A DNA stretch of 64,000 bases from Eutreptiella sp. 'Long Island Sound 2002' (GCA_964036045.1 OZ038379.1:31434001-31498000), one strand, 5' to 3'. Shown: positions 2,223 to 61,409, counted from the stretch's first letter. Numbers and translations are program-made. Notes: a model not told the origin generated them from the sequence alone.

Positions 2223-2960
2223 ATGGCTGATTTTCCACATGTTAGATGTACGGAGGTGGATGTACCGGGTGCCGGCCAAGATACCGAAGGAGATGAGGTT
2301 GTAGGACCTGTACCCTTACCGGTCCCATCAACCGGAGAAACGGCAGCGCGTGCTACAGCTACGCTCGCCTTGCAAGAGGTGATTATGTTTATGGGGTCAG
2401 CATCCCCATCCCCACCGCGGCCACCAAAGTGTGTCCCAAAGGACCGGCCCACCCCACCAAAGGCCTCCCTCAATGACCCATTGATTCTGAAGACAATGGA
2501 GTTGCTGAGGGACAACAGTGGTTGCCAGGCACGCGGGTTCGTGCAATACATTTCGGGGCTTCGCGCACAGTTCCGTTTTGCATTGCGGAACCCAATGCGC
2601 AACCCCTTGTCACATGGCAGCAAGGGGATTGGATATGCCGATCCCATGCAGCGAGGAGCGGGCTGCATTGATCTTGGATACACTTAATGCAGAATCACGT
2701 CCCACTGTTGAGTCGTCTTCCCATCCCCGTATCGCACCTCCTCGGCCACTTCCTCCCCCGCAAGCCGACCAGCCCACACTTACACAGATTGATCGGCAGA
2801 ACTCCGATTGCCAGCACATACGGTCGCTTTGACCACTTGTGGAAGCAGACCACACGGGTGGGCTGTTTCTTGTCTCTATGCAATGAGGACGCTTGCAACT
2901 CATGCAAACCCTTCTGCATAAGTGTTGTTGGAGACAAGGCAAAACATACATTTTTGGTGA
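2223..2960 (+). pseudogene. Orphan ORF fragment with a Cys-rich C-terminal part (frameshifted), probably transposon cargo
   Basis: ATG at 2223 follows a pyrimidine tract and AG (ttttctttttacagcagccATG). The 154-aa ORF continues after frameshifts into CQHIRS...CFLSLCNEDACNSCKPFC. Confidence 0.3.
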
Positions 2961-4639
2961 AAAAAAGGTGCAATGATGGGCAACCACAAATGGAAAACAC
3001 ATATACCTCTCGAAAACAGAAAAAAACACAAAAAACATAAAAAAACATCGAAAAACAACCCAAACGGGGCAAAAACGGCAAAATAAACAAAATAAATACA
3101 AAATCGCGTTTATTCCGGTTTGACGGGCTGACGGGACGGGCAATTACGGATCCGCCGCCTTCCCCATGTGCACACCCCAGAGAACTCCTTGGTTGTCCAA
3201 GTGTAGTGTAGCCCACGGTAGTTTGCGCCACACCACCGACTTCACTGCCGCCGTTGCCCCCCGGAACTCAGCACCTGCTGATTTTGCAAGGGCACACGCA
3301 TGGAGTCGTGTGCCCTCGCAGACAAACACATCCCCGCACACATACACCGCCTCCTACGAAATGTGGTTGATAACACCGGGAGTGACAAGCAGCAAGCGCT
3401 TTCCGGTGCTAATGCGCATCTGCACGCGCATGGAAGCGGCGTGGCAGCCTGAAATGCAAAGAACGATCACCGGAAAACCAGGCGGAACTCACTTGATGGA
3501 TAGGGTTGTGTTCGTCCCCGAATGGAGTGGCACGGTGCACGGCATCAAGGTTTCCATCACGGAGGAACAACCGCGGCATGGGCCGAGGCAGCCATCGGGA
3601 ACTCAAAGACTCCGGGCCCCTGGTTGGTTCCCCGGCCATGGTCCTGGCGGTGGCTTCAGTGATGCAGGACGTATGCCCAAAGTCCATCTTGGGCTCTGCA
3701 GCTTCTTGCCAAGGGAGTAACAGCCCTCCTCCAAATCCCTAGTAGAAGGGTGTGATTCCCCACGGCGCTTAACATTCAGCCTTGAAAAACAGGTTGAAAT
3801 TGTTTCCCCCCCCATGGGCTAGGCACTAGCTGCCTCGACCCAGACCTCACCTTGTTCTCTACTTGCCCCTCACTGCCATACCCACAACAGGCAAGACAGC
3901 AGAGCACAGCCAGGAACACTACCACAGTGCAAAACGTTGTGTCGCGTGACCATCCGGCTGCTATGCCGGCAACAACCCGGCACCACCACCACCAAAAATG
4001 CAAAATAGAAATTCTAAACCACCCCTTGCAGGCACGGACGCACTCCTCCGTCTCCGCCCGTTGGCCCGTTCAGGCCACCCCCCCCGTAACTGCTGCATCC
4101 ACATGTGCCTTGCCCCTTCTAGGCACTCATGTTTGCCTCTTCTTTGGTGGACGTTTTGCAGTCCACCCGGACTCCTCAATTTAGAGGAACTGCCCCAAGG
4201 CCACTCTACTCTAAAAAATGCACATGCACCATGTCAAGATATGGGGTCTCCAAGCTTGCTTGCTTGGCGGCTCCGATGATGCCTTCCTCTGAGGCGGCGG
4301 CCAGTTCTGCCCTGTCCTTACTGCACGCCTAAATTCCTAACGGACCAGCAACAGGGGCCGGGGATTTTTCCTTGGGCAAATTGGCTTCTATCATCCCAAA
4401 GGCACACTGCAGGCGCAATCTAGGCGGCGCATGGAAGTGGTACCTAAACTCCCTTGAGCTAATGGGGCATTGAAGGGTGTTGGTGGTGCACATGGTGACT
4501 ACTAGTGTACTTAGTTATCAACGTGCATCGCCATAAGGCTTCTCAAAACACTAAATGGCACTCATAGCAAGAAAAAGCAGGATAATCTTGAAAACGAGGG
4601 ATTGTGGGTCATTGGCAGGGCAATTTGCATTATTTGCCT

Positions 4640-5190
4640 AGAACGGCTTGAGAGACGCCTCATTGAACACCCATTAGCAATCATCTGATAGCCTAATTGC
4701 CGTGGATGAAGAATGAATTTCATTGGAAACGCCTACGTGACACAACCGTTGTTGTCGTGAGGTTTCAAGATAATATGCCATGAAAACGGGCTAGAAAACC
4801 GCTCATTTGCACCTCAAAATGGACCATGGCATGCCTGGAGACGCCTCATTGAACACCCATTTGCAATCATTTGATAGCTAATCGCCGTGGAAGAAGAATG
4901 GCCGTCATCTGAGACGCCTGCATGATACACTGATGATTGTCCTCAACTTTGAGGACGGTTGTTGAAAATAGGCAGGAAAACAGCTCATTTTCACCTCAAA
5001 ATGGACCATGGCATGGCACCATGGCATGAAAGACGCCTCGTTGAACAACCATTTTCAATGATTTGATAGCCCAATGGCTGTGGAAGAAGAATGGCCTCAT
5101 CCGAGATGCCTACATGACACACTGGTGATCATCCTTAATTTGCAGGACAATCGCCATGAAAACTGGCTGAAATTAGCCATTTTTGGGACA
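4640..5190. repeat. Tandem repeat, about 190-bp unit, about 3 diverged copies
   Basis: The motifs gagacgcctcattgaacacccatt and cacctcaaaatggaccatggcat recur at about 190-bp spacing. Confidence 0.85.
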
Positions 5191-6385
5191 CTAAATCAGC
5201 CATAAATCGGGCCAGCCGGCTCAAAATGACACGCAGCTTTTTTAGATGATGTACATTTGCTCTGCAATCTTTTTGAGCCCCTTGGATGCCCATTTTCAGC
5301 CACAGTGTCCACAGAAATAATTTTTGATCGTCTGCTGCTGCTTGCTGCTGCTTCCCGCAGCTTGCTGTTGCCTCTGCTGCTACTGTTGCTTGCTGTTAAC
5401 ATACACTGCTCTCACTTGGACCTAAAATGGTTTGTAAAACCTCCACTGGGAGACCCAGCTTGGTATTCAAATCTTACTACTGTGACCAAGCTGGGGACAC
5501 ACTTTGGAGTGGTGTGGCACATATGACAAAAGCCAAAGGAATTGTGATTCACTTTGCAGAGTTCAGTGCACACTCAGTACACTGCATCGTGTGCACCCTA
5601 CACACTGCACACTGCACACTCTAGATCGCCAAACGAAATTGGTTGCTTGCCTGCGACTAATGCTTAACAAAAAGGGGCAGCTATAGCCCAGCCAATTCTG
5701 TTGCGTTGCACGAGGTTAGCATTGCCAAGTTCTGAGGCAGATTTGATGGTGATGTATGGAAGGTGTTCGGCTTCAAGGAATGGTGGGAAATGACAGAGAG
5801 AAGCAAGCAGTGGACCGTTGTGGTACTAAAGGCCACTAAAGGTACTAAAGGGACACGCCGTGAGTGCACTATGTCACACAAAGACGGTTGCATAGCTTGC
5901 TATTTGATTCACATTGCGACACACACGCCCCTGCCCCCCGGCACACACATGCAACAGTGCATTGCACAACTCATTGTCCTGGACTAGATCCTGTACTTTG
6001 TTGCAGACGAGTCCTCCATACATGACTCAAGTATATGTGATCACAGGTTGTATCAGACCTGCAAGTTGAGTGAACTCCGTCACCTAGGGTTGGGTTATTG
6101 CTGCAACCCTTCTGGGGAGCATTGAGTGACCTTTTGCTCCATACGAAGTTTGCCACCAACCTCTTCAAGGTGACTGTTGGCAGGGATATTCTGCTGCTTC
6201 TGCTACTTTTTTTGAGGTCTTTCCATGTGTGAATGTACCACAATTAGACCCCCCCCCCCTTTGCAATGTGGGGCGCGCCGTTCGCGCACTGTGCAACCGT
6301 TCACCCTCACAAGCATGCTGTTGCTGAACAAGGACCTAATGATGCACTGCAGTACTGTATCTCACTGCATCTGTGCTCTGGTTAG

Positions 6386-6553
6386 GGACCAATGGTGGCC
6401 AGGCCTCAATGATCAATCATGTCGTCTGGTTGGAGACCGTCCAGCCCATTGCATATGGCATCAACCTCGGGCCTGCTGCCATCTTCCTGGCAGCCACTAT
6501 GTGGGCCTGCGACGGCATTTTCCGTCCTTATGTGAGTGTGCGGATGGATGCAG
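6386..6553 (+). CDS. EamA/DMT transporter exon 1 (possible start ATG at 6409)
   Basis: Acceptor ttag|gg. Encodes MINHVVWLETVQPIAYGINLGPAAIFLAATMWACDGIFRPYVSVRMDA, which fits the first EamA helix (G..AI..AA..W...G). Donor g|gtcgtt (phase 1) matches exon 2. Other GT donors at 6532 and 6592 are phase 0 and do not match. Confidence 0.75.
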
Positions 6554-8447
6554 GTCGTTGCTGGGATGCACATGGGATGAATGGGATGCAGGTGAGGACA
6601 GTCGCTTGCGCCTGAACATGACGCCCTGCCTTGACTGCAAGCATACCGAAAGCATCACAGTCATGAAGCTTTTGTGACGCTTTTGCCCCCTTCTTCCCTT
6701 TTCAACATCCACTACGTACTCGCGAAAGGAATTTCCAAAGGCCAGTAATGTGAAATGCAGAGATCTAGATGTCATCCCCCCGTTGATGCCCTGCGCTTCA
6801 TGCGATCAGGCCAGGGCGCAAGGGGCATGCATGCGGGCCGGCCGGCCGGCCGGCCGGCCAACAAGGCAGCGAGCCAGGCTGTCAACAGCGAACCAAACTG
6901 GACATGTGGGTCTTGCCCACATTGCCAGAGGTAGGTGGCGAAAGATACTGGAAATGGAGGAGGAACGGAAGCATGAATCTTCCAATTCGCTGCTGTATGT
7001 TGTGTGTTCACAGGAGCGCAGCCAATGCAGACGTAAAGGCAAAAAGTGGAGTGACAGTATAGGGAATGCCGTGCAAGGAAGTGTACACACAGTGCCAAGG
7101 TTTGGACATGAGCAACAACCCGAACCATAGTTCGGTGGGCTTTTTCCACACACACCCATTTTCTCTTGGCTGGAAAATGACTTGAATTGTATTGATGCCA
7201 TCCATATCATAAGAGTTTGTGTGCAAGGGAGTTGTGGAAACGCTGTTTCCATGCCTGTTGAGGGGGTGCGGCGTATGTAGTGTGTGTGCAGCGGTAGTGT
7301 GCACACAATGCAATGGCTACCCCCTAGAGCAGGAGTGTACATACTACTCCCCCGTAGAGTGTACTGAGACGGTGTAGAGTAAGAGGAGCAGTGGAGTGAC
7401 TATATCGGGTGACACGAAAGAGTAACAATATGGGGTGACACTGACAGTACAGATTGACATGCAAAGTAAGACAGTGCAGAGTGACAGTGCAGAGCGAAAG
7501 TGACAGTGCAGAGCGAGAGTTGTCACTTTCACGTACTCTGTCACTGCTTTACTGTCACTCAGTGATAGTATGATTGAGACTCCAGCCCCCTCAAAAATTT
7601 TTTTGGCCCCAGTCTTGAACCCTTGTCATCCAGAGTGCACCTTGTCTGAACCCCTGTGGCAGGGGCACCTGCCAATATATGCTGGCTGATTCCGGTCCCC
7701 TCAGGGTTCCGTTATTGACGGTTTACTCTGACGGCAGTTTGAGAAATGTAGTTTGTAAAAACGGTGCTGTGCCGATGGTGAGTGCAACATTTTTATGGCA
7801 GCGACAGGGTGCACCAATGGCTTGCTTCGGTTGCTCGGGTGTGCAGTTGCGTGTTTGCAGCAGTCGCGTCCTCCAGTTCATCACTGACATTGTGCAAGTG
7901 ACAGCCAGGCAACTGGGACAAGATATGGCTCCTGTGACCACCGGGGCAGTGGCCAGGCTGTGGTGCCGATGTGCGTCCTGCGATGTTCATACTCGTTTGA
8001 AATCATGCGGCACCGGAACCCAAACACATTGGCCTTGTTCTTGAGGTCATTCCAGGATTGCCTGGGGATCAGGGGCAGAAGGGGTTGCACGATTGGGGGT
8101 GAGAGTGCAGAGCAACCGCATAGCGTGACGCTTGCGGTCTATGATATTGTCACTCAACGAGTGCAGTGGATGATGCCCCGCACCCATCCGCTGCCCAGGC
8201 ATGGGTGTTGTCCCCCCGCCCCCTCTCCGGAACCCCCCATCCGAACCTTACTGACCGCCCGACATTTAGTGGAGGGCGAATTTCTTTGGGCCATTTTTGG
8301 TCCACAAACTTTTCGGTCCCAGAAACACCCCATTCAAGCACAGGCCTGCCCCTGGCCCAGCCCCAGGGCTTTTGGAGACAGTTGCAGTCGACCCCCCCCT
8401 CGACACATTTCGTGTTGTGGAGCACAGGACCGTTCTCTCTCCTGCAG

Positions 8448-38717: not shown

Positions 38718-38829
38718 GTATGTCTTGTGTTGGCGCCGCCTCCCACCACAACGCAACACGGCGCAGCACAATGCAACGCAACACAACACAACACACAGCA
38801 CACCACACTACACCACGACACACCGCACT

Positions 38830-40855
38830 TGCTGTGTAGCCTGCAGCTGGTTGTGGACCAGGTGGGCCTGCCCATGTGGCTCTCAGGACACTCTTCGGGA
38901 ACGACCCCTATCCTCATGCTCCGCCCCCCCCTACCCCAAGCGCAGGCAAGCCCGGCTGCACATCCCCCCGGTGGTGACCACGCATGATACTGCGTATGGT
39001 ATTGTAACCCACGTCTAGCTGCCCGGGGCAGTCTACTCGGCGGCCATTACGCTGGGCTACCACCACCTCGGGGTCTTCTACACCCCGGATGTAGTGCCCA
39101 AGATCTACGGGCACGGGCACCCCGTAGCAGCACAGTACACACGGTGTCAGCCTGGCTCCACCGGCACCAAGCAACCCTACAGCCCCTGATAGGGGCTCGC
39201 GCCCTGCGCTGACAGCAAGCCCCCAAGGATCGGGGTGCCGGGGCTGATAAGGCCCATCCCCTCCACGGTCCTATTGGGGGCCGGGAGGCAAAAACCACCT
39301 GGTAGCAGGTGGTCTACTAGCATTGCCGGGTGATACAGATCACTACAGCCATGGAGGACATCATTGCCGTCATGGGGTGGTCCGTGGTACTCCGGGTCCG
39401 CGAGCAGCCACGCCGGGACCTCCCGAGGGACACCCTACACCGGCCGTTGGTGATCCTCCCGGACATTCAAACGCTGGTCAAACCTGCAGTGGCGTGCTTC
39501 GGGTACCCAACCCAGTGCCTAGCCCACAAGTGCCCGGGGTACCCCCATAGAGGCCCGCTCTACATGGCCGTGCACGCCCTGGAGGCCCTGCCGTCGGAGC
39601 TAGATCCCGCGCTCCGGACGCACTTACGAGACCATTTCCGGATACATGCCGCGCTACACCCCCAGCAAGCCCCAGCAGCGGCCCCCATGTACCTACAGCC
39701 CCGGACGGAACCGGGTATATCGTTCCATGACCTACCCCTGCTGGCCATGATCCACGGGGCCATAGTAGCGACCCACGCCGCCACCACCCCGGCGGGCATG
39801 GCGATTGCTCTCGCATATGAGCATGCGCGAGGGGAGTACGCGGTTGTGGCAACCTCGGGAGTGGGGACGTCCCAAGAAAGAAGGCCTTGACGCAGCTGCT
39901 TTGCGCATGGCAACTGGCATCACAGCAAGGCGTCTACTGGGTGGTGCTGGACTCGGAATCGGCGGTGGGCACCCTACAAACTTACCAAGAGGGCGGATAG
40001 TGCGGTGATGGGATACACCAACTCTATGCGCAGACCCTGGGAGCGGAGCGCCTGGCCCCCACGGCTGCTATCACTGTAGTGTTCACCCCCTCCCACCGGA
40101 GAACTGCCATCAATGTACGGGTGGATGCAGCGACCAGAGAGGAGCCACGTGCGGACCTATGGTTCGCCGCCCCTACGCATGCTTGCCCCAGTAAAGTTCC
40201 GGGGCCACTGCCCGCTTGCCCCTTTTGAAACTTCACATGTGGTTGCAGGAGCAAGCAGCGGTCCCCGCTCTGGTACACTACGAATATGGTGGGGGCCGAA
40301 CTTCCGGCCACGCCTCCGCTTGCCCCCGGACTGTTTCACCACCAGTGACCAGCAGCGGCATCTCGTGGCCCGATGCACGCGCAACTTGCCCACCATGACG
40401 GTGCTAGTAGAATGATTGGCGCACTGCGTGCGCCACCTGTGCGAGTGCCCAGTGCATTCCCATGAGTGGCGCCCGGCCCGGAAGCGCCTACATACATGGC
40501 TCACCACCCACGTTGGGCCACGGATGGTTAGCAGGTTTAGGGTCAAGTGTGGGACTCCGCCGTCCTAGAACAGTGGTCGGTGGCAATTGCCACACCGTCC
40601 CTGCAAGCGACCTGGGTCTAGGACTGGTAGGATTGCACGACATCGTGACAAAGTTCATCCTGCAACTATCGTCGGAGTCACAAAAAGTCTGGCTCGCCCA
40701 TGCTAAGACCCGCAAAGGCATCGGGAAAGGCCTGTTCCCTGTATGCAAGACCATGCCAGCCATTGCCTTTTGGCAACAACGCCTTGGGTACACCACACCA
40801 CACCACACCACACCACACCACACCGCACCACACCACACCACACCACACCACACAG
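38830..40855 (+). mobile_element. LINE family B, 5'-truncated copy B1 (RT-RNH linker, RNase H, CCHC region, (CACCA)n tail)
   Basis: 38840-38920 matches 48030-48115. PGISFHDLPLLAMIHGAIVATHA...AYEHARGEYAVVATSGVGTSQE matches the RNase H of the long copy. Ends gccttttggcaacaacgccttggg(caccA)n. Confidence 0.85.
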
Positions 40856-42520
40856 GAGTTCCGCTGCCCACTGCCCCAGGGCAGTGAGGCAGTGCATTGC
40901 AGGAGTTCCGCTGCCCACTGCCCCAGGGCAGTGAGGCAGTGCATTGCAGGAGTTGCACTGCCCACTGCCCCCAGGCAGTGGGGCAGTGCATTGCAGGAGT
41001 TCCACTGCCCACTGCCCCCAGGCAGCGAGGCAGTGCATTGCAGGAGTTGCACTGTCCACTGCCCCCAGGGCAGTGAGGCAGTGCATTGCAGGAGTTGCAC
41101 TGCCCACTGCCCCCAGGCAGTGAGGCGGTGCATTGCAGGAGTACCACTGCCCACTGCCCCCAGGCAGTGAGGCAGTGCATTGCAGGAGTTGCACTGCCCG
41201 CTGCCCCCAGGCAGTGAGGCAGTGCATTGCAGGAGTTGCACTGTCCACTGCCCCCAGGCAGTGAGGCAGTGCATTGCAGGAGTTGCACTGCCCACTGCCC
41301 CCAGGCAGTGAGGCGGTGCATTGCAGGAGTACCACTGCCCACTGCCCCCAGGCAGTGAGGCAGTGCATTGCAGGAGTTGCACTGCCCACTGCCTCCAGGC
41401 AGTGAGGCAGTGCATTGCAGGAGTTCCACTGCCCACTGCCCCAGGGCAGTGAGGCAGTGCATTGCCGAAGTTGCACTGTCCACTGCCCCCAGGCAGCGAG
41501 GCAGTGCATTGCAGGAGTTCCACTGCCAACTGCCCCAGGGCAGTGAGGCAGTGCATTGCAGGAGTTCCACTGCCAACTGCCCCAGGGCAGTGAGGCAGTG
41601 CATTGCAGAAGTTGCACTGCCCACTACCCCCAGGCAGCGAGGCAGTGCATTGCAGGAGTTGCACTGCCCACTGCCCCCAGGCAGTGAGGCAGTGCATTGC
41701 AGGAGTTGCACTGCCCACTGCCCCCAGGCAGTGAGGCAGTGCGTTGCAGGAGTTGCACTGCCCACTGCCCCCAAGGCGGTGAGGCCGTGCATTGCAGGGG
41801 TTCCACTGCCCACTGCCCCCAGGCAGTGGGGCAGTGCATTGCAGGAGTTCCACTGCCCGCTGCGCCCAGGCAGTGAGGTAGTGCATTGCAGGAGTTGCAC
41901 TGCCCACTGCCCCCAGGCAGTGAGACAGTACATTGCAGGAGTTGCACTGCCCACTGCCCCCAGGCAGTGGGGCAGTGCATTGCAGAAGTTCCACTGCCCA
42001 CTGCCCCAGGGCAGTGAGGCAGTGCATTGCAGGAGTTGCACTGTCCACTGCCCCCAGGCAGTGAGGCAGTGCATTGCAGGAGTTCCACTGCCCACTGCCC
42101 CAGGGCAGTGAGGCAGTGTATTGCAGGAGTTGCGCCGTCCACTGCCCCCAGGCAGTGAGGCGGTGCATTGCAGGAGTTCCACTGCCCACTGCCCCAGGGC
42201 AGTGAGGCAGTGCATTGCAGGAGTTGCACTGCCCACTGCCCCCGGGCAGTGAGGCAGTGGATTGCAGGAGTTGCACTGCCCACCGCCCCTAGGTAGTGAG
42301 GCAGTGGATTGCAGGAGTTCCACTGCCCACTGCCCCAGGGCAGTGAGGCCGTGCATTGTAGAAGTTGCACCGCCCACTGCCCCCAGGCAGTGAGGCCGTG
42401 CATTGCAGGAGTTGCACTGTCCACTGCCCTCGGGCAGTGAAGCAGTGCATTGCAGGAGTTGCACTGCCCGCCGCTCCCAGGCAGTGCGGCAGTGCGTTGC
42501 AGGAGTTGCACTGTCTACTG
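40856..42520 (+). repeat. 47-bp satellite, about 35 copies, each unit a near-perfect hairpin
   Basis: Unit caggagttgcactgcccactgcccccaggcagtgaggcagtgcattg. The internal inverted repeat is tgcactgcccactgcc / ggcagtgaggcagtgca. Confidence 0.97.
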
Positions 42521-43130
42521 CCCGAGACACAGCCCGAGACGGCGCCCCACCTGTGGGCCTGCTCGGCTCAATCGCACGAATGGGGGCCAGCCCGCCGGCG
42601 CCTCGCAGCGTGGCTCGACCAGAAGGTGGGGCCACGGGCGGCCCCAGTGCGTCACCAGCTGTGGGTACCGACTGTGCTGGAGCAGTGGGCGGCAGCCCTG
42701 CGGACCCCCTCCATGCAGCTAGCCCACCTGGAGTGTACGGGGCCCCACTCGCTGGGCACGGAGTTCCTCCGCCACGTCGTGGAGGAGTCCATACGGATCT
42801 GGTACGCCCACGCCAAGGCGCGTGCCACACTGCTGAAGGCCCGCCTGGGCCCGGGCAGCACGATGGCGTGGGCGTTGCAGGAGCTGCGCTTGCACCAGCA
42901 AGCAGAAAGGGAAGGGGTGCAGCGGGAGCTCCTGGAATAAGCGCGGTCGCCAGAGGCGAACTCACCAGGTCTCCCCGACTCCCCCTTCCCCTGCCGAGGC
43001 CTACACACATACGCACAGCGCGCACACAACACACACAGCCAGCCCGTTTACCTGTACCCGTGGGTAGACATCCCGGCCTTTTGCCTTTTGGTAACAGCGC
43101 CTTCGGCACACCACACCACACCACACCACA
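42521..43130 (+). mobile_element. LINE family B, short 3' fragment B2
   Basis: ETAPHLWACSAQSHEW...WALQELRLHQQAEREGVQRELLE*, the conserved 3' UTR (cccgtttacctgtacccgtgggtagacatcccggcc) and a (CACCA)n tail. Confidence 0.9.
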
Positions 43131-46100
43131 CCTGGCACCCCCACCAGGGCAGTTGCCGGCGGCTGTCCACTGTGTTTTTACTATGATGTCATGCGTGGCC
43201 TCACGATGTATACACGGCATGACGCGGAGGGCCGGCAGGAGGCACTGCCCACCCATGCGCCCCCCCCGCGCTCGGATCGCCCCCCCCTCACGGAAGCAGA
43301 CGTCCGGCGCCTCATAGCTGACGCCGTTGGCCAGCCGCCGCGAGTGGCGCCTACACAGGTGAGGCCGATCACCCAACAGCCGACAGCCAATGCTGCGGAC
43401 GATGCCGTGCGGCCCCTGCCGGTAGGCCCGCCCCCCCCCACCCCGACACGCCTGGCTAAGCAGCCGACGCCCCCCTCCCGGAGCCCTGATCTCCCACAAC
43501 CGAAAGGCCAGGGAGCAGCGCCAGAGCTACAGCACCGTAGGCCCATGGCCCCGGCCGACTCACCGAAGCCTAAGACTGCAGGCGCGGATCGCCGAGGCAG
43601 CCGGCTTCGCCGGCGCCTGCCCACAGAGGCCAAGCAGGCCCCCAGCCCCCACCCTGGGCGGAGCCCCACGAGGCCCACACCCGCAAGCGGAGTGGCGGGT
43701 GCCCCCCGGTCCGAGCCCCCTGAATGCCCGCCGTCGACGGGGGTGGAACTGTCCAAGGACCTAATGGAAATAGGCCCCCTTGAAGCGGACCAGCATCCTG
43801 CGCCCGCTGACGCCCAAGCAGCCCCTGCGGCCAACCCCCAGCAAACAACCCACGGGCCCGCGGCCCCCCCAGGCCCCAGAGAGCGACCGGAATCCGGCCC
43901 CCCTGGCGCCAGAGAGCCCCACGGGCGAACAAGCCTTGGAATGGTGCGACGCCTGCCACTTGTGGTGACCCCGCCCCTGCGGCCATTGCCCCTAGTGGCC
44001 TTTCCCCCAGGAGACCAACAGGGCCATCACGGAGCCTGCCCCCGAAGATGGTCCCGTGCTTGAGCCCGCTTAGGAAGATTGGCCCTATGCCGCCCCACAC
44101 GTCTTGACTGTTGAGGCCCTAAGAATTGTCGCGGCCCACCCCCCCCCCCCCTCCCCATTGACGTAGACGCCTCCCAGGGCACGGCCACCCAATTGGCCGA
44201 TCTCATGGGGGACGATGCTCACGGCCTAAGCCCCCCCGACATCTCACAACCGGCGGACACGTCAGACGAAGACCCCGAGCTGCCTGCCGCAGGCCCCCCC
44301 GAAGGCCCCCCAGGAGATATGCACCAGCACGAGTCCAGCCTTGCGGCGCTCGTCGCTGACATTGCCCTGGAGGAGGTGAACCCCTGCACGGCCATGGACG
44401 TCGTTGTCTTCCTCAACAGCGAGCGCCTGTTGGCGGTGCGACGCCCCATGCGCGCGGCGGGCCAAAAGGCCACCCCCCTCCCCGGCCCCCACTCCTCTGA
44501 GAGTGATGGCCTCTCCCCCCTTCTGGCACAGTTTGCCAAGCGGAGCCGTGAGCTGCTCCAGCTCGTGGACTTCACCTTGGGGGTCCCTCCTTCTGCCTCT
44601 CTAGCTGGGAGGGAGATGCCATCCCGGCCCCTCACCCGCCGGGACTCGGGATCACGGCTTACTACGTGATCGAGGGGAAGGTGGAGCTCCGCCTCCCGAC
44701 CCCCGACGGGAACACCCGCCCCGGCTGGTGGCTCCAGGCCATGGCATATGCGTATGCCTAGTCTGCCCCGCCCCCGCCCCGGGTATTGCCCCTGGACACC
44801 CGGGCTTTGGTGCTGATATGCCAATGCCCACTGTATGTCCCACGAGAAACCCCGGCGACCGCCCCACACCCGGTGCAGATCTGCATGCAGCGGGGGGATC
44901 AGTATGCCCAGGTGGACACGGCCCGGCTGGACCTCGGGCCCTCCAACCTGTCAGCCCCGTGGGGTTCAAAATCCTGGGAGCGCAGGCCCAAGCCCTGCAT
45001 GACTGGATAGTCCTCAGGCTAACCGGCGAGCGGCTGGCAGGGACCCCTTCCTTGACTAAGGTGTTCGGCCTCATCGGGCGCGACCTGCGTGCCGCCCAGG
45101 AGTCTGCCAAAACCTCAGCACCAGAAGTGAGCCCCTAGGGCGAGCCTACTCCTGCCGAGCTGAACCCGGTGCCGGAGGACCCCGGCCTCTCGCCCTCCCG
45201 GAACTGATCGCACGCCGGAGGACATGCATGCCGTTGGGTATGTGTGGCTCAATGTCCGTGGCACATACCCGCGGCAACGCCTGCTGGCGCAGGCCCTGCA
45301 CATGGCAGCACACTGCCCCACAATCCTCATTGTGGCCGAGGCCCAATCCAAGGTAGGCGCCGAGGATCCCCCTTTCCAAGATTACACCCGGCGCGTCGTG
45401 CTCCCCGCCCATGGAAAGACGGGGGCAGGCCTCGACATGTATGTCCGTTCCGGCACTACAACCCGGGCCACCTTGCTCTGGGGCAAGGAGGACGCGAACG
45501 CCCTCCTCATGGAGGTGTTGATCCCGTGGGGTAAGCACCATGTGCTAGCGGCCCATGCCCCCCAAATCAACATTGGTGTTGAGCCATATGTGCGATGGTG
45601 GGCAGGCATCTGGCGCGAGGTCACCTGCTAGTGGACCCGGCGACCGTTCTGGTGGTGACCGACACCAACTGAGCGGCCCGACCGGCGGACCGGGGAACTC
45701 CGCGCCCCGATACAGGCTACCGCGCGTTCTTGCAGGCTTTCACCCTCAGGCACCCTCCTCTCGGACCACCATCTACCCCTCCTATTCACTATCGCCCATC
45801 CGGTTGCCCGGCTAGACAAACCCAGCCCCCATACAGTCTCCCGCACGCCGGAGTACCACTTCGGCTTAGTGGCTCTGTCCCCAGCGGATACGGCCGATTT
45901 CCAGAGGTCGGTGCTCGGCAGGAGAGACATTGACCCCCAACTCGCCCCAGCCGGATGGCTGAAAGGCCTGCAGCGGGCGAGCTATGATTGAGCCCACGCC
46001 GCGGGCATGGTCCGGGCTCTCCACTTCCGGCACTACCGCCTCCGGGCACGCCCCGCGGAGTGAGCCCCTCCCTCGAAGTCCCCCCAGCCGCCTTTCCTGG

Positions 46101-49100
46101 CGCGCAGTATGCTCCCCTCCGTGGGACGCTTACGGCGATACCTCAAAGCATGCTGGGTAACTCCGTGGCGGTGGGGCACACCCTCAAAAGAAGCTTAGTG
46201 GTGCTAGGGGAGGCCCGGCGCCCACAAAGCCTCCGGGATAACAAACGCGGGGCCCTCCGGCGTCCACAAGAAACTCGCAACCTCCGGCGCACCCTGGAGC
46301 AGTGGGGGGAGGTGCAACGGCGCAGCCGGCCCCCCCCGCGGGATATCTCCGAAATCCCATCGGACAACAAGGAAGTCCTGAACTCCAGGGAGACTTTGTC
46401 TGCCCTATATGCGAGCCGCATGCGGCTCTAGGGCCACAGCTACTGAATCCGGTATGACCCCGAACGGTGGGCCCACTTCAAACAATACCTGGTGCTCCTG
46501 CCACAGCATGCCCCGCCGGCCCGGGAAGCCTATGTCCAGCCTCTCCACCTCTAGAAGGTACAATCCGGTAAGGCCCGCGGCCCGGACCTCCGTCTGCCAG
46601 AGGCGGACGTCTGCATCGACATATCTTGGTACCGGCACCTGCTGGGGGCGGACCATGTGACCCTGCGCCATCGTGCGCAGCCGCCTAGTATGCCGCACGG
46701 TGGGCAGGCGTGGGCGGGTCACCCTACTCCTTAAAAACCTTGACAAGCCCATCCAGGAGGCAAACCCCCGGGGCATCACCATCTCCTCCCACGTCTCAAA
46801 GCTGGAGCCCGAGGCTTTCTACGCCCCGGCGACGGCTATCTACGAGCAGGACCTGGGGGCCCCTTGCCTCGTAGGAGGCATGCGAGGAGTGTCCCTCCAG
46901 GAAGTGGTCCGCACGGTGCACATGAAGTTAGACCTCGCTAAGCTTCAACACCGGTTGGTGGACATCCTCATCACGGACCTCGCAAAATTCTTCAACGTAA
47001 TCGCCCACGGCATCCACCCCATTGTGGGGGCCCGCGTGGGCCAGGTAAAGGCTCGCCACCTCGCCACCCACCTTGAAGGCTTCTCGTACACCCTGCCCTT
47101 GGGCCCCTGGCAGTCGAGTACCGTGACCCAACTCTTGGGTACTCCCCAGGGCACTATCCAAGGGGTCCATTCGGGCGCCAGGGCGGCTTTCCCGTTCCTA
47201 CAATTCCTGGACATTGCATGCAAGGCCTTAGCCGTTTCGCTTCCCGGGGCTCATGTGGGTGGACGACACGATCATCCTACTGGAACGGGGCGACGGCCGC
47301 CCTATACAGGGCGTCCTGGTGGATCATCGGACGTACTACGAGGGTATCTTGCGGGTAGATGTCCCGGACCGCAAAATCCAGCACGGATAGACTTCAGATC
47401 CCCAGCCCCTACGATCGCCCACTCCCGCAGCGGTGGGCCCGACATGTGGGCCAAGCGTGGGCAACGGATAGCCCGGAGCAACGGGAGGAGGCGTTGGCCG
47501 GGGCCCCGGAGATCCAGCCCTCCCGGGTTCTCTGATATATGGGGACGGACATCTACCTCTAGGGCACACCCACGGCCCCCCGTAACCTACCGGAGATCCG
47601 GGCGGCGGTGTGGAAGCAACTCCGCCCCCAGCGACTCTCCCCAGACGCGGCCATGATAGTGCTAATGGCCAAGCACCCGAGAAAATTGCTCCCCTTGGCC
47701 AGCGTATACCGCCCCACGGCCCAGGTGCACGCGGCCAACGACGCCCTAATGGTGCGGGCATACAAGCACATGACGGGAATCTCCCGCCATGCCCACACCG
47801 AAGCACTCTAGGGGCACTGAGAGCATGGCGGCCAGGGTTTGACCCGGTCCTCATACTCGTGGCAGGCTGCAGTCGCCCGGGAATGGGTCTGGCAGGGGGG
47901 TTGGGCCAAGAAAGAATTTCGAGAGTCTCAAACCTATGCCCTCCAGGCACACCCCACGCTCAGAGGGGGGTGCTTCGTGGTGCTTACCCCAGGGCAGTAC
48001 ACCCACCACCCGCGGTGCCCCCACCTCATCGCTACATTGCAGCGGGTAGTGGATGAAGTGTCCATGCCCATGTGGATGCCGGGCCCGTGCTCAGGGACAA
48101 CCCCCATCCTGGTGCGGGGCCCGGGCAGACCCCGTGCAGGGGCGGCGGCGGCCCCCGCCCCCCAGGTGGAGGTGTACCCGACCTAGTACGGCGATGTCGT
48201 ACAGGTGATCATCCCCCCGACCGTCCACGAAACCGTGCAGGCTTTGGGATACCAGCACCTGGGAGACCGGAGCGCCCCCTTAAAGAGCGGGCACCAGCCC
48301 GCAAGTGTTTCCCCGGCCTTAGGGCCTACTCGCAATGGGCCCAGGCGTCATCGGCCCCCCTCGTCACCGTCACCACGCCACTGCCGCCCCGGCCATGGAT
48401 AGCCATAGCCCCGGCTGCAGTGGCAAAGTTCAAGGACCCCGCGGAGTGTGTGGCGCACAGGTGCCCAGGGCACCCGAACAAGGGGCCCCTCTACTACTCG
48501 CTTGGTACGATGGGAATAGTACTGGCGGAGATCGGCCCTGCCCTGCAAACCCGGCTCCTTGAGCACCATGGAGACCTGGCCCTCCTCGTGCCGCACGGCC
48601 TTGCTACCGACCCCCCCGCGGGTGCTAGCCCCCGAAGTCAAGCCGGGCATTTGGTTCCATGACCTGCCGGTGCTGGCCACTCTTTGCGGCACTGTAGTCG
48701 CGGTGGATGCCGGGACCACGCAGGCAGGCATGGCTATGGCAGGAGTCGCCCAGAGCGGGCCCGAGGCCTACCGGACCCATGTGGCCTCCGGGGTAGGCAC
48801 CTCGCATGAGGGGGAGGCCATGATACTCCTCTCGTACGTCCGCAAGCTGACGCAACAGCCAGGGGTATTCTGGCTGGTGCCGGACCCTGAGGCGGCGGTG
48901 GGGGCCCTCCGAACGTACCAGGAAGGAGGCCATTGTGGAGATGGCATACACCACCTCTACGCCATTGTCTTGGGAGGCCAGCACCTCTCCCCGACTCGGC
49001 CATCAACGTGGTAACCACGCCGTCGCACTGGATAACGGACCGAAACGCCCAAGTTGATGCAGCGACGCAGGAGCCGCCGGAGGTTCTCCTCAGGTGGCTC

Positions 49101-49975
49101 CTCCGGCGCCCCTTCTCCTTCCTCCCCCGAGTGACCTACCGGGACTAGTGCCAGCTCTCCCCAACGGCGCTAAGCGACTGGTTGCCTCCATACCCGCACG
49201 GGCCGGCTACGAGGCCCGGTGGGAGTGAACTACACATCGGGGAGTGGACTCCCCCGGTTCCATAGTGACAAGCGGCGCCACATAACGGCGCACCGCATGG
49301 ACAACATCCCTACGATGACTGTCTTGGCACACCGGTCCTCCTACCAAGACACGGTGTTGGACACCACGTGTCGCCCCTGTGGGGGCGCACCCCGAAATGG
49401 CGCCCCCCCTCTGGGCCTGCGCGGCCCAGTCCCATGAGTGTGAGCCAGCTCGGCGGCGGCTTGCGGAGTGGCTCAATCAGAAGGTGGGGAAACAAGCGGC
49501 CCCGGTGCGCCGCCAGGAGCCGGCCGTACTGGAGCAGTGGGCGGTGGCCTTGCATTCCCCCTCCATGCAGCAGGCCCACATGGAGTGTTCAGGGCCCCAC
49601 ACGCTGGGGACAGAGTTCATACGCCACGTAATCGAGGAGTCCATCAGAGTTAGGTACACCCACGCCAAGGCGCGTGCCATGTTGCTGAAAGCCCGCGTGG
49701 CCCCAGGCAGCACGATGGCGTGGGTGTTGCAGGAGCTGCGCCTGCACCGGCAGGCGGAGAGAGAGGGAGTACAACGGGAGCTACTGGGATGACGGCACTC
49801 GCCAGGAGGGAGACAACTATTTTTCCCCGACTCCCCCTCTTTCCGCCGAAAACCACACACTTGCACACGGCGCACACGCTACACACACGGCCCTCCCGTT
49901 TACCTGTACCCGTGGGTAGACGTCCCGGCCATTGCCTTCTGGTAACAGCGCCTTCGGCACACCACACCGCACCAC
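43131..49975 (+). mobile_element. LINE family B, near-full-length decayed copy B3: Pro-rich ORF1, APE, RT (WVDD), RNase H, CCHC, (CACCA)n tail
   Basis: APE: VWLNVRG...LIVAEAQ...VVTDTN (45240-45670). RT: NPRGITISSHVSK...ITDLAKFFNV...TPQGTIQG...MWVDD (WVDD at 47256-47267). RNase H: VAVDAG...GEA...VPD.E...TPSHW...NAQVDAA (48700-49070). CRPCG...HLWAC follows, then the 3' UTR and tail. Multiple stops and frameshifts. Confidence 0.9.
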
Positions 49976-50775
49976 ATGCGCTTAGTCTGGGCCGGGGGTG
50001 TACCAAGCCCACGTCCCTTCTGGCATGGGCACCTCCCAGGAAGGGGAGGCCATGATCCTGTTGTCCTATGTCCGACGGCTAGCAGCAGAGTCCGGGGTAT
50101 AGTGGCTTGTGCCGGACTCAGAGGCAGCTATGGGGGCCCTCTGCACTTACCAGCAGGGAGGTCACTGTGGGGATAGCAGATGCCATCTGTATGCCACGCA
50201 CCTGGGGGGCAGCCGTGTGGTCCCCACCTCTCCAATCAACGTGATTACCACGCCGTCGCACTGGATCACGGGCCTCAATGTCCGGGTGGATGCAACGACG
50301 CCAGAGCCGCCTGAAGTGGACCTAACCCGGCTCCTACGTCGTTCCTTCTCTTTCCTCCCCCGGGTGGCCTACCGGGACTAGTGCCAGCTCTCCCCCACAA
50401 CGCTGCCTGACTGGTTGTACAGCTAGGCCTCCATTCCGGCAAGCGTCGGACATGAAGCCGATTGGGGGCCTCACTACACGCCGGGGGGAGGTCTCCCTCT
50501 AGACTGCAGGAGCTGCGCCTGCACCTGCAGGAGGTGTGCCTGCACCACTAGGCAGAGAGACAGGCGGTTCCGCGGGTTCTACTGGGCTAACTACGATAGC
50601 CTGGTGGTGAGCCTCCCGTTCTCCCTCTTCCCGCTCTCCACCCCTTTCTAAACACACTCGCACACGGCGCGTCACGACACGCATAGCCATCCCGTTTACC
50701 TTTCCCCGTGGGTAGACATCCCGGCCTTTGCCCTTCGGTAATAGCGCCTTCAACACACCACACCACACCACACAC
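49976..50775 (+). mobile_element. LINE family B, internally deleted 3' copy B4
   Basis: RNase H C-terminal half (GEAMILLSYVR...VPDSEAAMGAL...TPSHWITGLNVRVDA), 3' UTR and (CACCA)n tail. Confidence 0.85.
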
Positions 50776-52479
50776 CCTGAGTACTCCCCGGCTCTACCCA
50801 TGGGCTGGGTGCCGGGTGCGAAGCTCAGCACGGAGGTGTACTAACAGTGTCGGGTGTGCGCATGCCTTAGTGCCAAACACCAACCCTCGCTAGTTATGGC
50901 CGCCTTGGCTTCGGGAACGGCTAGCGACCCCTAGCAAGGATGGCAAGCATAGCTTGCCCCCCCCCCCCCCACCCACCCACCCTCCTTGCACGCGCCCTAC
51001 CCATGCACGGGGGCCACAACCGTCCCCCCCCCCCCCTCTCCCCCGCCCCATTGCCGCCGCACCACTCGCCCCTGTTCCAAAATCACCCCCCCCTCCTGTG
51101 CCTAGCCTCACCCGCTGCACCGCATGATACCCTGCTTGGCGTATGATGCCCTACCATCGTAGGATGCCCTGCAAGCGGCAGGATGCGGCTTCTCCCCCCC
51201 CCCCCCCCCCCACGTCCCTGCCCCTCTGCCTGTACTTGTGGGTGGTGCCCTATGTTGGGCGGAAGCATCCGATGCTTGTTGGTGGTGCCATGTGCCGGGC
51301 GGAGCCCTCCGAAGCCAAGGGCGGGGACCCAAGGAACGCTGTGAATGGGCGATGCGGCCTGCTGAAATGGCGGTTTGAAGCCGCATCGCCTTTGGCGCGG
51401 CCTGTTGACACAAGGAGCCCCCCCCCCCCCCCAAATATGGCTAGGGCAATGTAAGCAGTCACTGGTGCCCGGAGCAGCCCACGAGTGGACGCTGGGAGAG
51501 GCCGGGAGCAGCCTGGGGCTGACGCTTGTCGCTCGTCCCCCGCGAGCCCTCGTCCATGGGACACCCCAAGACTGGTATTTCAAACATTCTTGAGTATGGG
51601 CAAGGTATAAGGCCCCCCGGCCACCACCCTATTGCCCACATCATGGAGGGCATTTGGGAGGGGTAACAGTCCCCGAATCCCCAAAGGCAGCTCCAATGGT
51701 GAGCGCACCACTGGATGGGGCATGTCCGCGGGGTAAAACCATAGCACTAAGCAATAACCGATAACCACATTGAGCTAAAGCCGTAATTGATGCCTAAAAG
51801 GGTTAAAGGGCCTCTCCGGGCCCTGTTAAGTGCGCCCCCCCAAATCCGGACTCAACCGCCCGCGACGAGGCAGCCTCTTGGAGGTATGGCTGGCGTGCAG
51901 TTAATTGGTTGCCAAGCCTCGTCCCATCTCCGTGGGCTATAACTGCCCAAGGGGGCTCCGGGTTCTGTATCCGTTTGCGAGTAAAGCCCCGGCAAAACCC
52001 ACGTTTTTTGGTTAACGAGAGAATCACCCCCACGACACGCTAGACCAGACTGAGGATCTGTTACCGCTACCCCATGGTTATGACCCCCAGTATTGCTGCA
52101 TATTTAGCCAGGGTTTCCAGCCATGCTACACCTATCACCGCCGTCGGGTTCCCCCATCAATAGAGCTTTGAGCTGGGCACTCGGCTCAAGAGATCTTACT
52201 AGCTACCGCCACTGCCGTGATGGCCGGGAACTGCTCGTGGCCTACCCCTCTATACCGTGCACCCCTAGTGCCTACTCCACCCGTTTTGGGCTCCCCAAGA
52301 GCCCTAGCCAATTGACTACTTGCCCCCAAGGTGGGACCCTCCCACTTCTTGCGTAACCACTCATTGCTGCACCCCCCCCCCCCCCCTCCCCCAATCCAAA
52401 CACCTAGGGTGCTGCCCTCGCGACACGTGGTGACCAAAGTTGGAACAACCCACACTAGGACACGTGGTAAACGGAAAAG

Positions 52480-53040
52480 CGCTGGCAACCACAAGTGAGG
52501 GCGACAGCGGGCACCGCCCAAACCCCTTTGCACCCCCCCCCCCCCAACCCAACCCCACCAGTGCTCAAGGCCCATGCTTCGTGCGTGGCCCTTACATCCA
52601 GGCAACGACCACCAACACTGCGCGACACCCCGTCTCCCCCTAGCCAGTGATCCCGCAACCGCAGAGACGGTGGTTTTCCCAAGTGGCCGCTCTGCCCGGG
52701 CAGCGACCACCGGCATGGCGAGATATCCCGCGTGCCCCTGCCTGATGCTCCCGCAACCGGGCAGGTCATGGCCTTCCCCAATGGCTGCTCCTCCTGGGCA
52801 GCGACCACCAGCAAGGCAACACAACCCTTCTCCCCCCAGCCGGCGATCTCGCCACCGGATAGACAATGGCCTTCCGAGTTGGCCACTCCCCCCGGGCAGC
52901 GACCAACAGCATGGCGAGACACCCCCTCTCCCCCTGGCCGTTGAGCGCGCAACGAGATGAATGATGACCTTCCCCATTGACCGATCCTCCCGGGCAGCAA
53001 CCACTAGCATGGCAAGCCCTATTGACTGTTCCACCTATGC
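52480..53040. repeat. Diverged tandem repeat, about 98-bp unit, 5-6 copies
   Basis: gggcagcgaccaccagcatggcga recurs near 52600, 52699, 52797, 52896 and 52993. Confidence 0.8.
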
Positions 53041-59699: not shown

Positions 59700-61370
59700 A
59701 ACCATGGATAGAGCTCCAGGAGGGGGCAGTGGCACTCTTTGGGTACCGAAACCGGTGCCTATCCCATAAGTGCACCCCAATAGGAGACCCTTGTACATGG
59801 CTCTCCACACCCTGAATGCGCTGTCATCAGGGCTAGACCCAGCCCTGAGGATCCTGCGCTCCTGAGCACTTTGGAGGCACCGTAACGCTGCACCGCCACA
59901 AGGCCCCCACGGAGTCGCCCAGGTGCATGCGATCCCGGACGGAACTAGGCTTATGGTTCCATGGCCCGCCACCGCTGGCAACCATCATCGGGGCCATCGT
60001 GGCCACCGATGCCGGGACCACCCAGGTGGGGATCGTCATGGCGCTAGCGTACGAAAGTGCTCCGGGAGAATACCACACTAGGGTGGCCTCCGGGGTGGGA
60101 GCCTCCCAATTAAGAGGGGGAGACCATGGCGCTGTAGCTTTGTGTCCGCCAACTAGCGTCGTAGGAAGGGGTGTACTGGGTGGTGCCTGACTCCGAGTCC
60201 GCCATAGGTGTGCTATGAACGTACTAGGAGGCCGGCCACTGCGAGGATGGCATACACCACCAGTATGCACACACCCTAGGGGCCCAATGCCTCGCCTCAA
60301 AGGTGCGATCAACATCGCCTCGCCTCAAAGCTGCGATCAACATCGTGGTCACCCACTCTCACTGGATCACCGCCATCAATGTGCATGTGGACGCCGCAAC
60401 CAAGGAGGAGCCGCTGGTGGACCTCAGCTAGATGCTACGACGGCTGTACGCGTTCATACCGGCGGCAAAGTTTCGGGACCACAGCCAACTGGCCCCGCCC
60501 GACTTGCAGGGTTGGCTGCACGAGCAGGCGGCCGTCCCTACAAGGGTGCAATATGAGCACCCGGGGACTAAACCATGAGTGGGGCCGGGGCTTGCGACTA
60601 GACTGGTGTACGAGTGACCAGCAAAGGCACTTGGTGGCCCACCGGATGCGCAACCTCCCGACCATGACCGCAATGTGCAGCTTTGCACTCGTTGCCTGCT
60701 GTACGACGGCTGCCCAGAAACGGCCCAACACCTCTAGGAGTGCCCAATCAGTCCCATGAGTGGCGGCTGGCCCGCCAACGCCTCCACACGTGGTTGAGCA
60801 CTGATGTGGGACCCAGGCGTCCCAACTGCAAGGCCGGTTGTGGGACTCGGGGTTACCGGAGCAGTGGTCAGCAGCCATCACGACGCCGTCCATGCGGACG
60901 GCGCACATGGGGCTGGCGGGACCGCACAACATGGGGACAGAGTTCATCCGGCAAGTGCTGTCGGAGTGGCAGCAGGTGTGGTTGGCCCATGCCAGAGCAA
61001 GAGACGGCCTCATCAAAGCCCAAGCAGGGCCAGGAGGCACGATGGCGTCGGTGCTACGGGAGCTCCAACTGCACCAACCGGAGCGGCAAGGCGTCCCTCA
61101 GGCAGCCCTAAACTAAGACTGCCTGGCCCGGGGGGGGGGGGGGGGGCTAGCCCCGCCATCCCAGGTGCGCCACACACTACACACAGCATGCGCTGGGACA
61201 CACAGCCCTCCAAGCTTGCAAACTCCCGCGTGCAAGACCATCCCGGCCATTGCCTTTCGGAAACAGCGCCTTCGGCACCCCGCACTACACCACACACCAC
61301 ACAATACAACACAATGCAGCACAGCACAGCACAGCACAACATAACACAACACAATATATCACGCAATACC
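59700..61370 (+). mobile_element. LINE family B, diverged 3' copy B6 with a (CACAN)n tail abutting the exon 8 acceptor
   Basis: LGLWFHGPPPLATIIGAIVATDAGTTQVG...YHTRVASGVG, GTEFIRQVLSE...LRELQLHQ, and the tail gccattgcctttcggaaacagcgccttcggcac(cacaa/cacag)n. Confidence 0.8.
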
Positions 61371-61409
61371 ACAAGCTGACACAACCAACCTCCTCTCTCT
61401 TTTCTGCAG

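Follow-up and report, generated by a model that had tools for sequence, protein, structure and literature searches.

The question raised by this locus is how several copies of one LINE came to be stacked head-to-tail on one strand. The locus lies in a window of 64,000 nucleotides (the whole stretch of DNA that was analysed) from Eutreptiella sp. 'Long Island Sound 2002' (GCA_964036045.1 OZ038379.1:31434001-31498000). A first-pass annotation of positions 38,718 to 50,775 had described four copies (B1 to B4) of a LINE family, here family B, together with a microsatellite tract and a satellite, and had proposed that the family either targets (CACCA)n, its own tails included, or concatenates by template jumping.

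Layout of the stack

The tract, B1, the satellite, B2, B3 and B4 were all located as described, all on the + strand. Taking two longer copies found elsewhere, L008 and L011, as the reference, the stack (38745-61375) comprises:

38745-38829, + strand: degenerate ACAxC tract, directly 5' of B1 (sequence; TRF period 5, 13.6 copies, 73% matches)
38830-40853, + strand: B1, 5'-truncated to its 3'-most ~2 kb, old (65-70% identity to B3/L011)
40853-43132, + strand: composite non-autonomous element, young (TRF; recurrence of its junction in the genome)
43133-49976, + strand: B3, the longest copy in the window (body 43133-49958, tail 49959-49976; comparison with L008 and L011)
49989-50775, + strand: B4, old, 5'-truncated (body 49989-50750, (ACACC)4 tail to 50775; 72-75% identity to B3/L011)
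50776-51993, + strand: 'C' head, the 5' head of the partner element, starting exactly where the B4 tail ends
59726-61294, with a tract to 61375, + strand: last family-B 3' part, very old (63% identity to B1 over 1.29 kb)

A GT at 38718 precedes the degenerate tract, whose 5-nt period runs over 38747-38829, and we read the tract at 38745-38829 as what is left, on the upstream side, of the microsatellite originally targeted. B1 (body 38830-40789, 3'-end motif at 40772, (ACACC)12.8 tail at 40790-40853) starts straight after it, as had been claimed: genomic matches begin at its first query base, 38830. The composite element is inserted into the tail of B1 and consists of a 47-bp satellite (40853-42523; 35.5 units, 90% matches by TRF), B2 (42524-43107; 79-80% identity to B3/L011), which corresponds to the 3'-terminal ~600 bp of family B, and an (ACACC)5 tail (43108-43132). 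B4 begins about 12 nt past the B3 tail and carries an internal deletion, other copies being ~470 bp longer between query positions 518 and 538. The 'C' head (50776-51993) falls beyond the interval covered by the first-pass annotation. The last copy has its 3'-end motif at 61259 and is followed by a degenerate ACAxC tract (61295-61375), ending just before an acceptor-like 'ttttctgcag' at 61409, which we take to be what remains of the target microsatellite on the downstream side; the tract that hosted the stack probably lay in an intron. Rfam gave no match in the window, and Pfam gave none for the two exon-like pieces flanking the stack, which were searched separately.

Structure and domains of family B

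B3 had been called full-length; it begins at reference position 326, has lost about 185, 130 and 530 bp internally and carries many stops and frameshifts. The following regions are recognised in it at motif level:

about 45224-45800, + strand: APE-like
about 46673-47330, + strand: RT
about 48640-49060, + strand: RNase H-like
about 49340-49430, + strand: C-terminal Cys/His motif

The 3' motif is common to all copies, while their 5' ends fall anywhere from reference position 326 to 7820, and terminal repeats are absent, as in a LINE. The RT motifs read D-x2-K-x-F-D (A), PQG (B) and VDD (C). Pfam RVT_1, Exo_endo_phos and RNase_H gave no match in 26 family-B ORF pieces, to E = 10; a 43%-identical relative (P0035) scores 32.9 bits against RVT_1, for a cutoff of 29.6. 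Among look-alikes found with a language model are RVT_1 clusters (score 0.94), which make up 27 of the 30 atlas look-alikes, and RNase_H clusters (0.92). The putative reverse transcriptase and RNase H domains of family B are supported only indirectly. For an APE-type endonuclease preceding the RT there is a candidate at motif level only: WLNVRG, ILILAEAQ, TDTNSA, SRIDTV and SDHH occur in the expected order, and the APE-like motifs (N/E, D-N, RID, SDH) are kept among copies. Searches of the PDB (phmmer and profile searches) gave no match for the family-B pieces, the APE-like region included, and a profile of family-B relatives matched no solved RT there; an AlphaFold2 model of the RT piece, built on a 20-sequence alignment, reached a pLDDT of 42 and was unusable. 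A phmmer search against 1.8 billion representatives returned 229 relatives, all of them short unnamed fragments. A 29-mer taken close to the 5' end of family B has just two exact matches in the genome, in L008 and L011; one end of L011 contains an unrelated ~360-bp tandem repeat. Judged on these sequence features, family B is a very divergent non-LTR retrotransposon.

A satellite-carrying partner

The satellite and B2 had been taken for separate pieces. Their order stands; however, the satellite/B2 junction (42430-42640) recurs with full coverage at no fewer than 30 scattered sites, where identity is 95-99%, and at about ten more with 88-94%, and because of this recurrence the two are regarded as one retrotransposed composite, a satellite followed by an independent LINE fragment being ruled out. 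A linker joined to reference positions 7760-7866 is found with 88-91% identity in L001, L005, L009, L010 and L016, and at other loci the partner runs from its head through a ~100-bp repeat and the 47-bp satellite to the family-B 3' end. The partner and the LINE have their last ~107-600 nt in common; both a LINE-derived 3' end and a dispersed internal junction, as looked for in a partner of a LINE, are present. All seven copies of the 'C' head that were compared adjoin a microsatellite.

Family-B junctions at microsatellites

We surveyed 28 family-B 5' junctions in the window and at 20 other loci (264 kb sampled), which are the best matches to the B3 3' end and represent one subfamily. At 16 of these junctions, at least three perfect ACA[ACG]C units lie no more than 45 nt upstream on the same strand, and the count rises to 20-21 when short or degenerate tails are included. 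Across the 264 kb, the same arrangement holds for 2.9% of positions on the same strand and for 0.07% of those on the opposite one (binomial P = 7e-18), so that the 5' flanks are enriched over background in a fixed orientation. Such an enrichment had been set beforehand as the test of targeting, and the opposite outcome, in which most copies would have unrelated 5' flanks, is not what we find, since most flanks carry the microsatellite. For comparison, the genome (2.28 Gb) contains 64,932 in-register matches to perfect (ACACC)5, which cover roughly 0.02% of it. Around one junction in four has no upstream microsatellite (L006, L015, L017-7181, L018-8874, L020 and window position 59948). None is seen either upstream of the point where the alignment stops in L008 and L011, the two longest copies, whose true 5' ends were probably missed in the captured sequence. 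The survey revealed no empty-site allele, and any target-site duplication would be masked by the surrounding repeat.

The upstream tract is preceded by unrelated DNA, with no family 3' end, in L002, L004, L007, L013, L014, L016 and at B1 of the window, and by a degenerate C/A-rich stretch, again with no family 3' end, in L019; at least seven upstream tracts are therefore not tails of an upstream copy. Moreover, the same repeat is found on both sides of insertions, including repeats that the family did not make: ACAAC on either flank in L013, mixed ACAGC/ACAAC in L014 and ACAGC in L007. Three insertions interrupt a single (ACAAC)n tract in L010, and the outer two carry ACACC units next to the element and ACAAC units distally. 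The proposal of targeting is thus upheld by the junctions, the flanks and the genome-wide counts; the part that does not stand is its restriction to (CACCA)n, since ACAAC and ACAGC tracts are used as well.

Genome-wide, two in-phase ACANC units stand upstream of 420 of the 698 exact partner heads, where about 0.01 would be expected by chance, and these units include ACAAC, ACAGC and ACATC variants. Exact 3' ends followed by ACANCACANC number 1,997, and 639 of these have a start other than ACACCACACC. Among neighbouring 3' ends no more than 10 kb apart on contig C1, 32 of 33 are co-oriented, compared with 26 of 53 pairs more than 100 kb apart, and only 0.6 such close pairs would be expected at random.

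Proposed mechanism

Taking these observations together, we consider it likely that family B targets ACAxC microsatellites, its own tails included, and that each copy provides a new landing site, which results in serial, co-oriented stacks. The stack in the window is made of five or six insertions that occurred separately and at different times in a single tract. The family-B RNA would end in (ACACC)n, and target-primed reverse transcription would place the element, always in the same orientation, within ACA[C/A/G]C microsatellites already present; the insertion would leave an ACAxC tract at its own 3' end, and later copies of the LINE and of its partner could land in such tails. Target selection may lie in annealing of the ACACC RNA tail to the nicked bottom strand, in a repeat-specific endonuclease, or in both, and we infer that element-proximal ACACC units are RNA-templated and distal units are target DNA. 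Regeneration of the target by each copy would explain why the stacks are co-oriented and how satellite arrays of kilobase size came to be dispersed.

A variant of this explanation, which differs only in who nicks, is endonuclease-independent capture: ACAxC tracts would be fragile, the family-B RNA tail would prime at spontaneous nicks, and specificity would come from the lesion in the DNA and from the RNA tail. The acceptance of ACAAC, ACAGC and ACATC fits 4-of-5 pairing with an ACACC RNA tail. No observation counts directly against this variant, the APE-like motifs are conserved among copies, and we regard it as unlikely.

Alternatively, the stack could have been made in one event, the reverse transcriptase leaving a part-copied RNA and continuing at the 3' tail of a second RNA of the family. 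Such template jumping, the second of the two origins proposed by the first-pass annotation, would also yield 5'-truncated copies on one strand right after an upstream tail, as seen in the window, L001, L010 and L017. The members of the window array, however, differ widely in age, their best genomic relatives being 95-99% identical for the composite, 89% for B3 (over its last 597 bp), 82-85% for B4 and 74-83% for B1, and neighbouring members are of very different age. This age spread, together with the differing truncation points, argues against a single concatenation event, as do the several junctions that adjoin microsatellites with no upstream element and the agreement of ACAAC and ACAGC types across both flanks, and template jumping is very improbable as the origin of the array, although it may account for individual pairs.

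A passive view, in which there is no target choice, tails expand by replication slippage and copies pile up in tolerated, low-recombination or intronic DNA, has a precedent in the accumulation near CA repeats proposed for Drosophila Waldo-A/B (PMC3812793), and some family-B tails are indeed very long (130-350 bp), suggesting expansion. Accumulation of this kind is nevertheless hard to reconcile with junctions that meet the repeat with single-base precision and invariably on one and the same strand, with the single repeat phase shared by 60% of exact partner heads, and with non-ACACC types that agree across both flanks, and we give it very little credence. Least credible is segmental or tandem duplication, by which unequal crossing-over between repeat tracts would have copied a unit with its LINE fragment: it does occur in the genome and contributes to the counts of co-oriented clusters, but in the window the truncation points differ (reference positions ~5900 for B1, 7272 for B2, 326 for B3 and 6691 for B4), pairwise identity among the four copies is 65-79%, their ages differ and the flanks are not common, and shared breakpoints with near-identity were found only in L009. 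Local duplication does enlarge some arrays: three 2,057-bp units in that locus are near-identical, with linkers 99-100% identical and of the same microsatellite substructure.

Returning to serial insertion into ACAxC tracts, a further-reaching version is conceivable, which we hold only tentatively and consider somewhat doubtful. The RNA tail, besides the endonuclease, would pick the target, (ACACC)n annealing to any ACAxC tract and leaving polar hybrid tails, while abortive events would seed ACACC blocks in other repeats. The family would in this way convert and multiply its own landing sites and, with its partner, would be a main vehicle for the spread of kilobase satellites and long introns through this 2.3-Gb genome.

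Comparison with known elements

LINEs that target microsatellites have been described for a few families in animals, from insects and fish. Family B resembles Waldo, found in (ACAY)n, and Mino, found in (AC)n, both of the R1 clade and described from mosquito and earwig in the portion of the review that treats them (Kojima and Fujiwara 2003, cited in PMC3812793), in being a LINE inside a CA-rich microsatellite, in one orientation and with the repeat on both sides; ACAY also resembles ACAxC. Waldo and Mino, however, have target units of 4 or 2 nt and animal hosts, whereas the family-B target is a pentanucleotide, and family B differs further in its RNase H-like domain and its satellite-carrying partner; it is set beside them by description, not by RT phylogeny. 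For Kibi in (TC)n and Koshi in (TTC)n of fish, and for Dong in (TAA)n, the same review's passages report sequence-specific integration into simple repeats (Kojima and Fujiwara 2004, cited in PMC3812793), thought there to rest on endonuclease specificity (PMC3812793). Family B differs from these in repeat units and hosts, and the review mentions neither head-to-tail stacks nor satellite cargo for them (PMC3812793).

Stacking and partnership have parallels of their own among retrotransposons. Co-oriented arrays arise by repeated insertion of TRAS and SART in the (TTAGG)n of silkworm, of HeT-A and TART in Drosophila, and in the Zepp clusters of Chlorella. Family B likewise inserts repeatedly and co-oriented into a short tandem repeat or earlier copies, but those elements occupy chromosome ends or centromere-like clusters, whereas family-B stacks are dispersed, a probable intron included, and their landing pad is an interstitial pentanucleotide repeat. 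With regard to the partner, eel UnaL2 and UnaSINE1 form a LINE/SINE pair with a common 3' tail, and human SVA is a composite with an internal VNTR. Like UnaSINE1 and SVA, the family-B partner is a gene-less element with a LINE 3' end, presumably mobilised in trans, and with variable tandem repeats in its body; unlike them, it carries kilobases of 47-bp and ~100-bp satellite and has the microsatellite target in common with its LINE.

Significance

Family B joins the known class of microsatellite-targeting LINEs, and extends it to a pentanucleotide target, ACAxC, used by a very divergent element, with an RT invisible to Pfam, in a large protist-type genome. The start of priming can be read directly from the hybrid tails, which makes the question of endonuclease versus RNA annealing testable. 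Provided the gene model is correct, the family also accounts for the way in which a short intron carrying a simple repeat could reach more than 20 kb with its exons undisrupted.

Layout of the stack

The window covers 31434001-31498000 of contig C2 in a 2.28-Gb assembly; its background GC content is ~50-55%, and that of the elements is ~65%. Copies of the LINE-type family B and their associated repeats form a plus-strand series over 38745-50775, with an older member further downstream:

38747-38829, plus strand: degenerate tract with a 5-nt period, at the start of the series
38830-40789, plus strand: B1, tail (ACACC)12.8
40853-42523, plus strand: 47-bp satellite, 35.5 units
42524-43107, plus strand: B2, tail (ACACC)5
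43133-49958, plus strand: B3, short tail
49989-50750, plus strand: B4, tail (ACACC)4
ending at 61294, plus strand: very old family-B 3' part, next to it a degenerate ACAxC tract and then an acceptor-like site at 61409

Every family-B copy is terminated by the same ~18-nt 3' motif and then the pentanucleotide repeat. B3, which the first-pass annotation had taken for a full-length element, starts at reference position 326 when compared with the two longest copies (L008 and L011), lacks three internal segments relative to them and is interrupted by numerous stops. The order of satellite and B2 proposed there holds, but B2 is not a separate LINE fragment, since the junction recurs as a unit: the stretch 42430-42640 was found over its full length in at least 30 dispersed places with 95-99% identity, and in ~10 others with 88-94%. 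Because it recurs dispersed at 95-99% identity, satellite and B2 together are one young mobile composite element.

The stack appears to carry on beyond B4 as far as 61294. The entire plus-strand stack is bracketed by a putative GT donor at 38718 and the acceptor-like site 'ttttctgcag' at 61409, and degenerate ACAxC remnants, one beside each of these sites, enclose ~22.6 kb of plus-strand elements. The open frames that flank the stack resemble membrane-protein exons (putative); two exon-like pieces beside it, searched singly, had no Pfam match.

Identity of family B

The copies have a common 3' end but differ in where their 5' side is cut short, and family B therefore follows the LINE pattern. 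Family-B pieces matched neither Pfam nor PDB sequences, and the AlphaFold model of one piece was too poor for use. Reverse transcriptase (RT) motifs A, B and C are readable, motif C including WVDD, for example at:

window 46673-47330, plus strand: RT motifs A-C
locus L001 6465-7889, minus strand: RT motifs A-C

A distant relative (P0035, 43% identical) exceeds the Pfam RVT_1 threshold, and the language-model look-alikes are RVT_1 clusters; together with the motifs, these point to an RT domain in family B. It is the only distant relative to attain that threshold. An RNase H-like domain keeps a D, E, D, H-N-D pattern across eight copies and has RNase_H clusters as look-alikes. A putative APE-like endonuclease is recognised by its ordered motifs. 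The 229 relatives found in 1.8 billion representative proteins are all short unnamed fragments.

Repeats at the 5' junctions

The sample comprised the window and 20 other loci, each 10 kb long, that surround the genomic sequences most similar to the last 597 bp of B3. With the L011 copy as mapping reference, 28 family-B 5' junctions could be judged, those of the window copies among them. An automatic rule required three or more perfect ACA[ACG]C units in the 45 nt ahead of the junction, and 16 of the 28 passed it; 4-5 further junctions adjoin short or degenerate tails, and about a quarter of the junctions have no repeat upstream. In the 264 kb sampled, itself repeat-enriched, the rule is satisfied at 2.9% of positions on the element strand and at 0.07% on the opposite strand, and the junction enrichment has a binomial P of 7e-18. 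Genome-wide, perfect (ACACC)5 has 64,932 in-register matches, ~0.02% of the sequence.

The upstream tract is preceded by unrelated DNA in L002, L007, L013, L014, L016, L004 and at window B1, and by a degenerate C/A-rich stretch in L019; at none of these places was a family 3' end found ahead of the tract. Some tracts are of other types than ACACC and are alike on both flanks of the insertion (ACAAC in L013, mixed ACAGC/ACAAC in L014, ACAGC in L007). At L010 three insertions divide one (ACAAC)n tract, and in the outer two the element-adjacent units are ACACC and the distal units ACAAC. Such polarity would be produced if an ACACC-tailed RNA annealed within a related repeat and underwent target-primed reverse transcription. 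The nick itself may be the work of a repeat-specific endonuclease or may come from fragile repeat DNA. Blocks of ACACC x18 and ACACC x5 also lie inside long (ACAAC)n arrays (L010 3385-3768, L013 5493-5753); abortive insertions of the tail alone, which would change one repeat type to another, may account for them.

L008 and L011 have no repeat upstream where their mutual alignment stops, and their true 5' ends are probably absent from the captured sequence. An exact word from the full-length 5' end occurs only twice in the genome. The 60 nt upstream of the L011 copy (L011 18-77) resemble a diverged extra copy, at a 99-nt offset, of the first 60 nt of the element (117-175); the similarity is borderline (score 34, where 200 shuffles reached at most 33) and may stem from a 5' UTR built of monomer-like repeats. 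L011 9500-9884 (contig C10, 70183837-70184221) is a tandem repeat of ~360-bp period, not related to family B; it was matched at least 292 times, in numerous arrays spread over many contigs.

A satellite-carrying partner

A ~1.2-kb sequence, the 'C' head, starts directly after an ACAxC tract in 7/7 copies. Its positions include:

window 50776-~51993, plus strand: 'C' head, directly after the tail of B4
L005 8042-9413: 'C' head
L009 8027-9329: 'C' head
L012 8061-9334: 'C' head
L020 1701-3415: 'C' head
L006 6595-5383, minus strand: 'C' head

At other loci a ~100-bp repeat comes after the 'C' sequence, and then the 47-bp satellite, a linker of 120 nt and the final 107 nt of family B; the 'C' sequence is therefore the head of a non-autonomous partner. 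The full-length partner, composed of 'C' head, ~100-bp repeat, satellite and B 3' end, is an SVA-like composite, resembling SVA in being a composite element with tandem repeats inside. The first 21 nt of the head occur 698 times in the genome, 420 of them with two ACANC units ahead in exact phase (mostly ACACC, also ACAAC, ACAGC and ACATC). Exact 3' ends with two ACANC units after them number 1,997; the units start ACACCACACC in 1,358 and otherwise in 639, many of the latter being homogeneous ACAAC or ACATC.

Several poly-C runs of 15-26 bases occur within the 'C' head region (window 50957-51432, 52372-52392). Satellites of ~98-100 bp, of at least two families, lie between microsatellites and LINE-type 3' ends:

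L020 1000-1640: ~98-100-bp satellite, with its own related 3' end and (ACACC)n tail
window 52601-53013: ~98-100-bp satellite
L010 3770-4043: ~98-100-bp satellite
L005 1420-1720: ~98-100-bp satellite

Origin of the stacks

Orientation was counted for the first 100 repeat-followed 3' ends on contig C1. Among neighbour pairs within 10 kb, 32 of 33 are co-oriented, with 0.6 close pairs expected at random; at distances above 100 kb the figure is 26 of 53. Stacking in one orientation thus characterises the genome and not the window alone.

The first-pass annotation had offered two explanations, targeting of (CACCA)n or concatenation by template jumping. The junction and flank results bear out the former. 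The window stack is unlikely to be a single template-jump concatemer, as its members differ in their best genomic relatives (B1 74-83%, the composite 95-99%, B3 89%, B4 82-85%) and did not all enter at one time. Junctions that are base-precise, strand-specific and phase-specific are left unexplained by passive accumulation. Segmental duplication of the window stack was rejected, because the members are truncated at different points and share 65-79% identity with one another. At L009 460-4806, three 2,057-bp units, each with satellite, linker, family-B 3' end and long microsatellite, are near-identical down to the substructure of their repeats; this array is a local tandem duplication and not three insertions.

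LINEs that insert into microsatellites include Waldo (ACAY), Mino (AC), Kibi (TC), Koshi (TTC) and Dong (TAA), and their targeting mechanism is poorly understood (PMC3812793). In the E. gracilis assembly, 1.5% of the genome is classed as LINE and 33% of repeats are unclassified (PMC11252322). A full-text search of the literature on Euglena non-LTR elements and microsatellites yielded one general paper and no description of family B. The head-to-tail stacks are real and already explained, arising by serial insertion, and family B, with its satellite-carrying partner, joins the known class of microsatellite-targeting LINEs as a new family.
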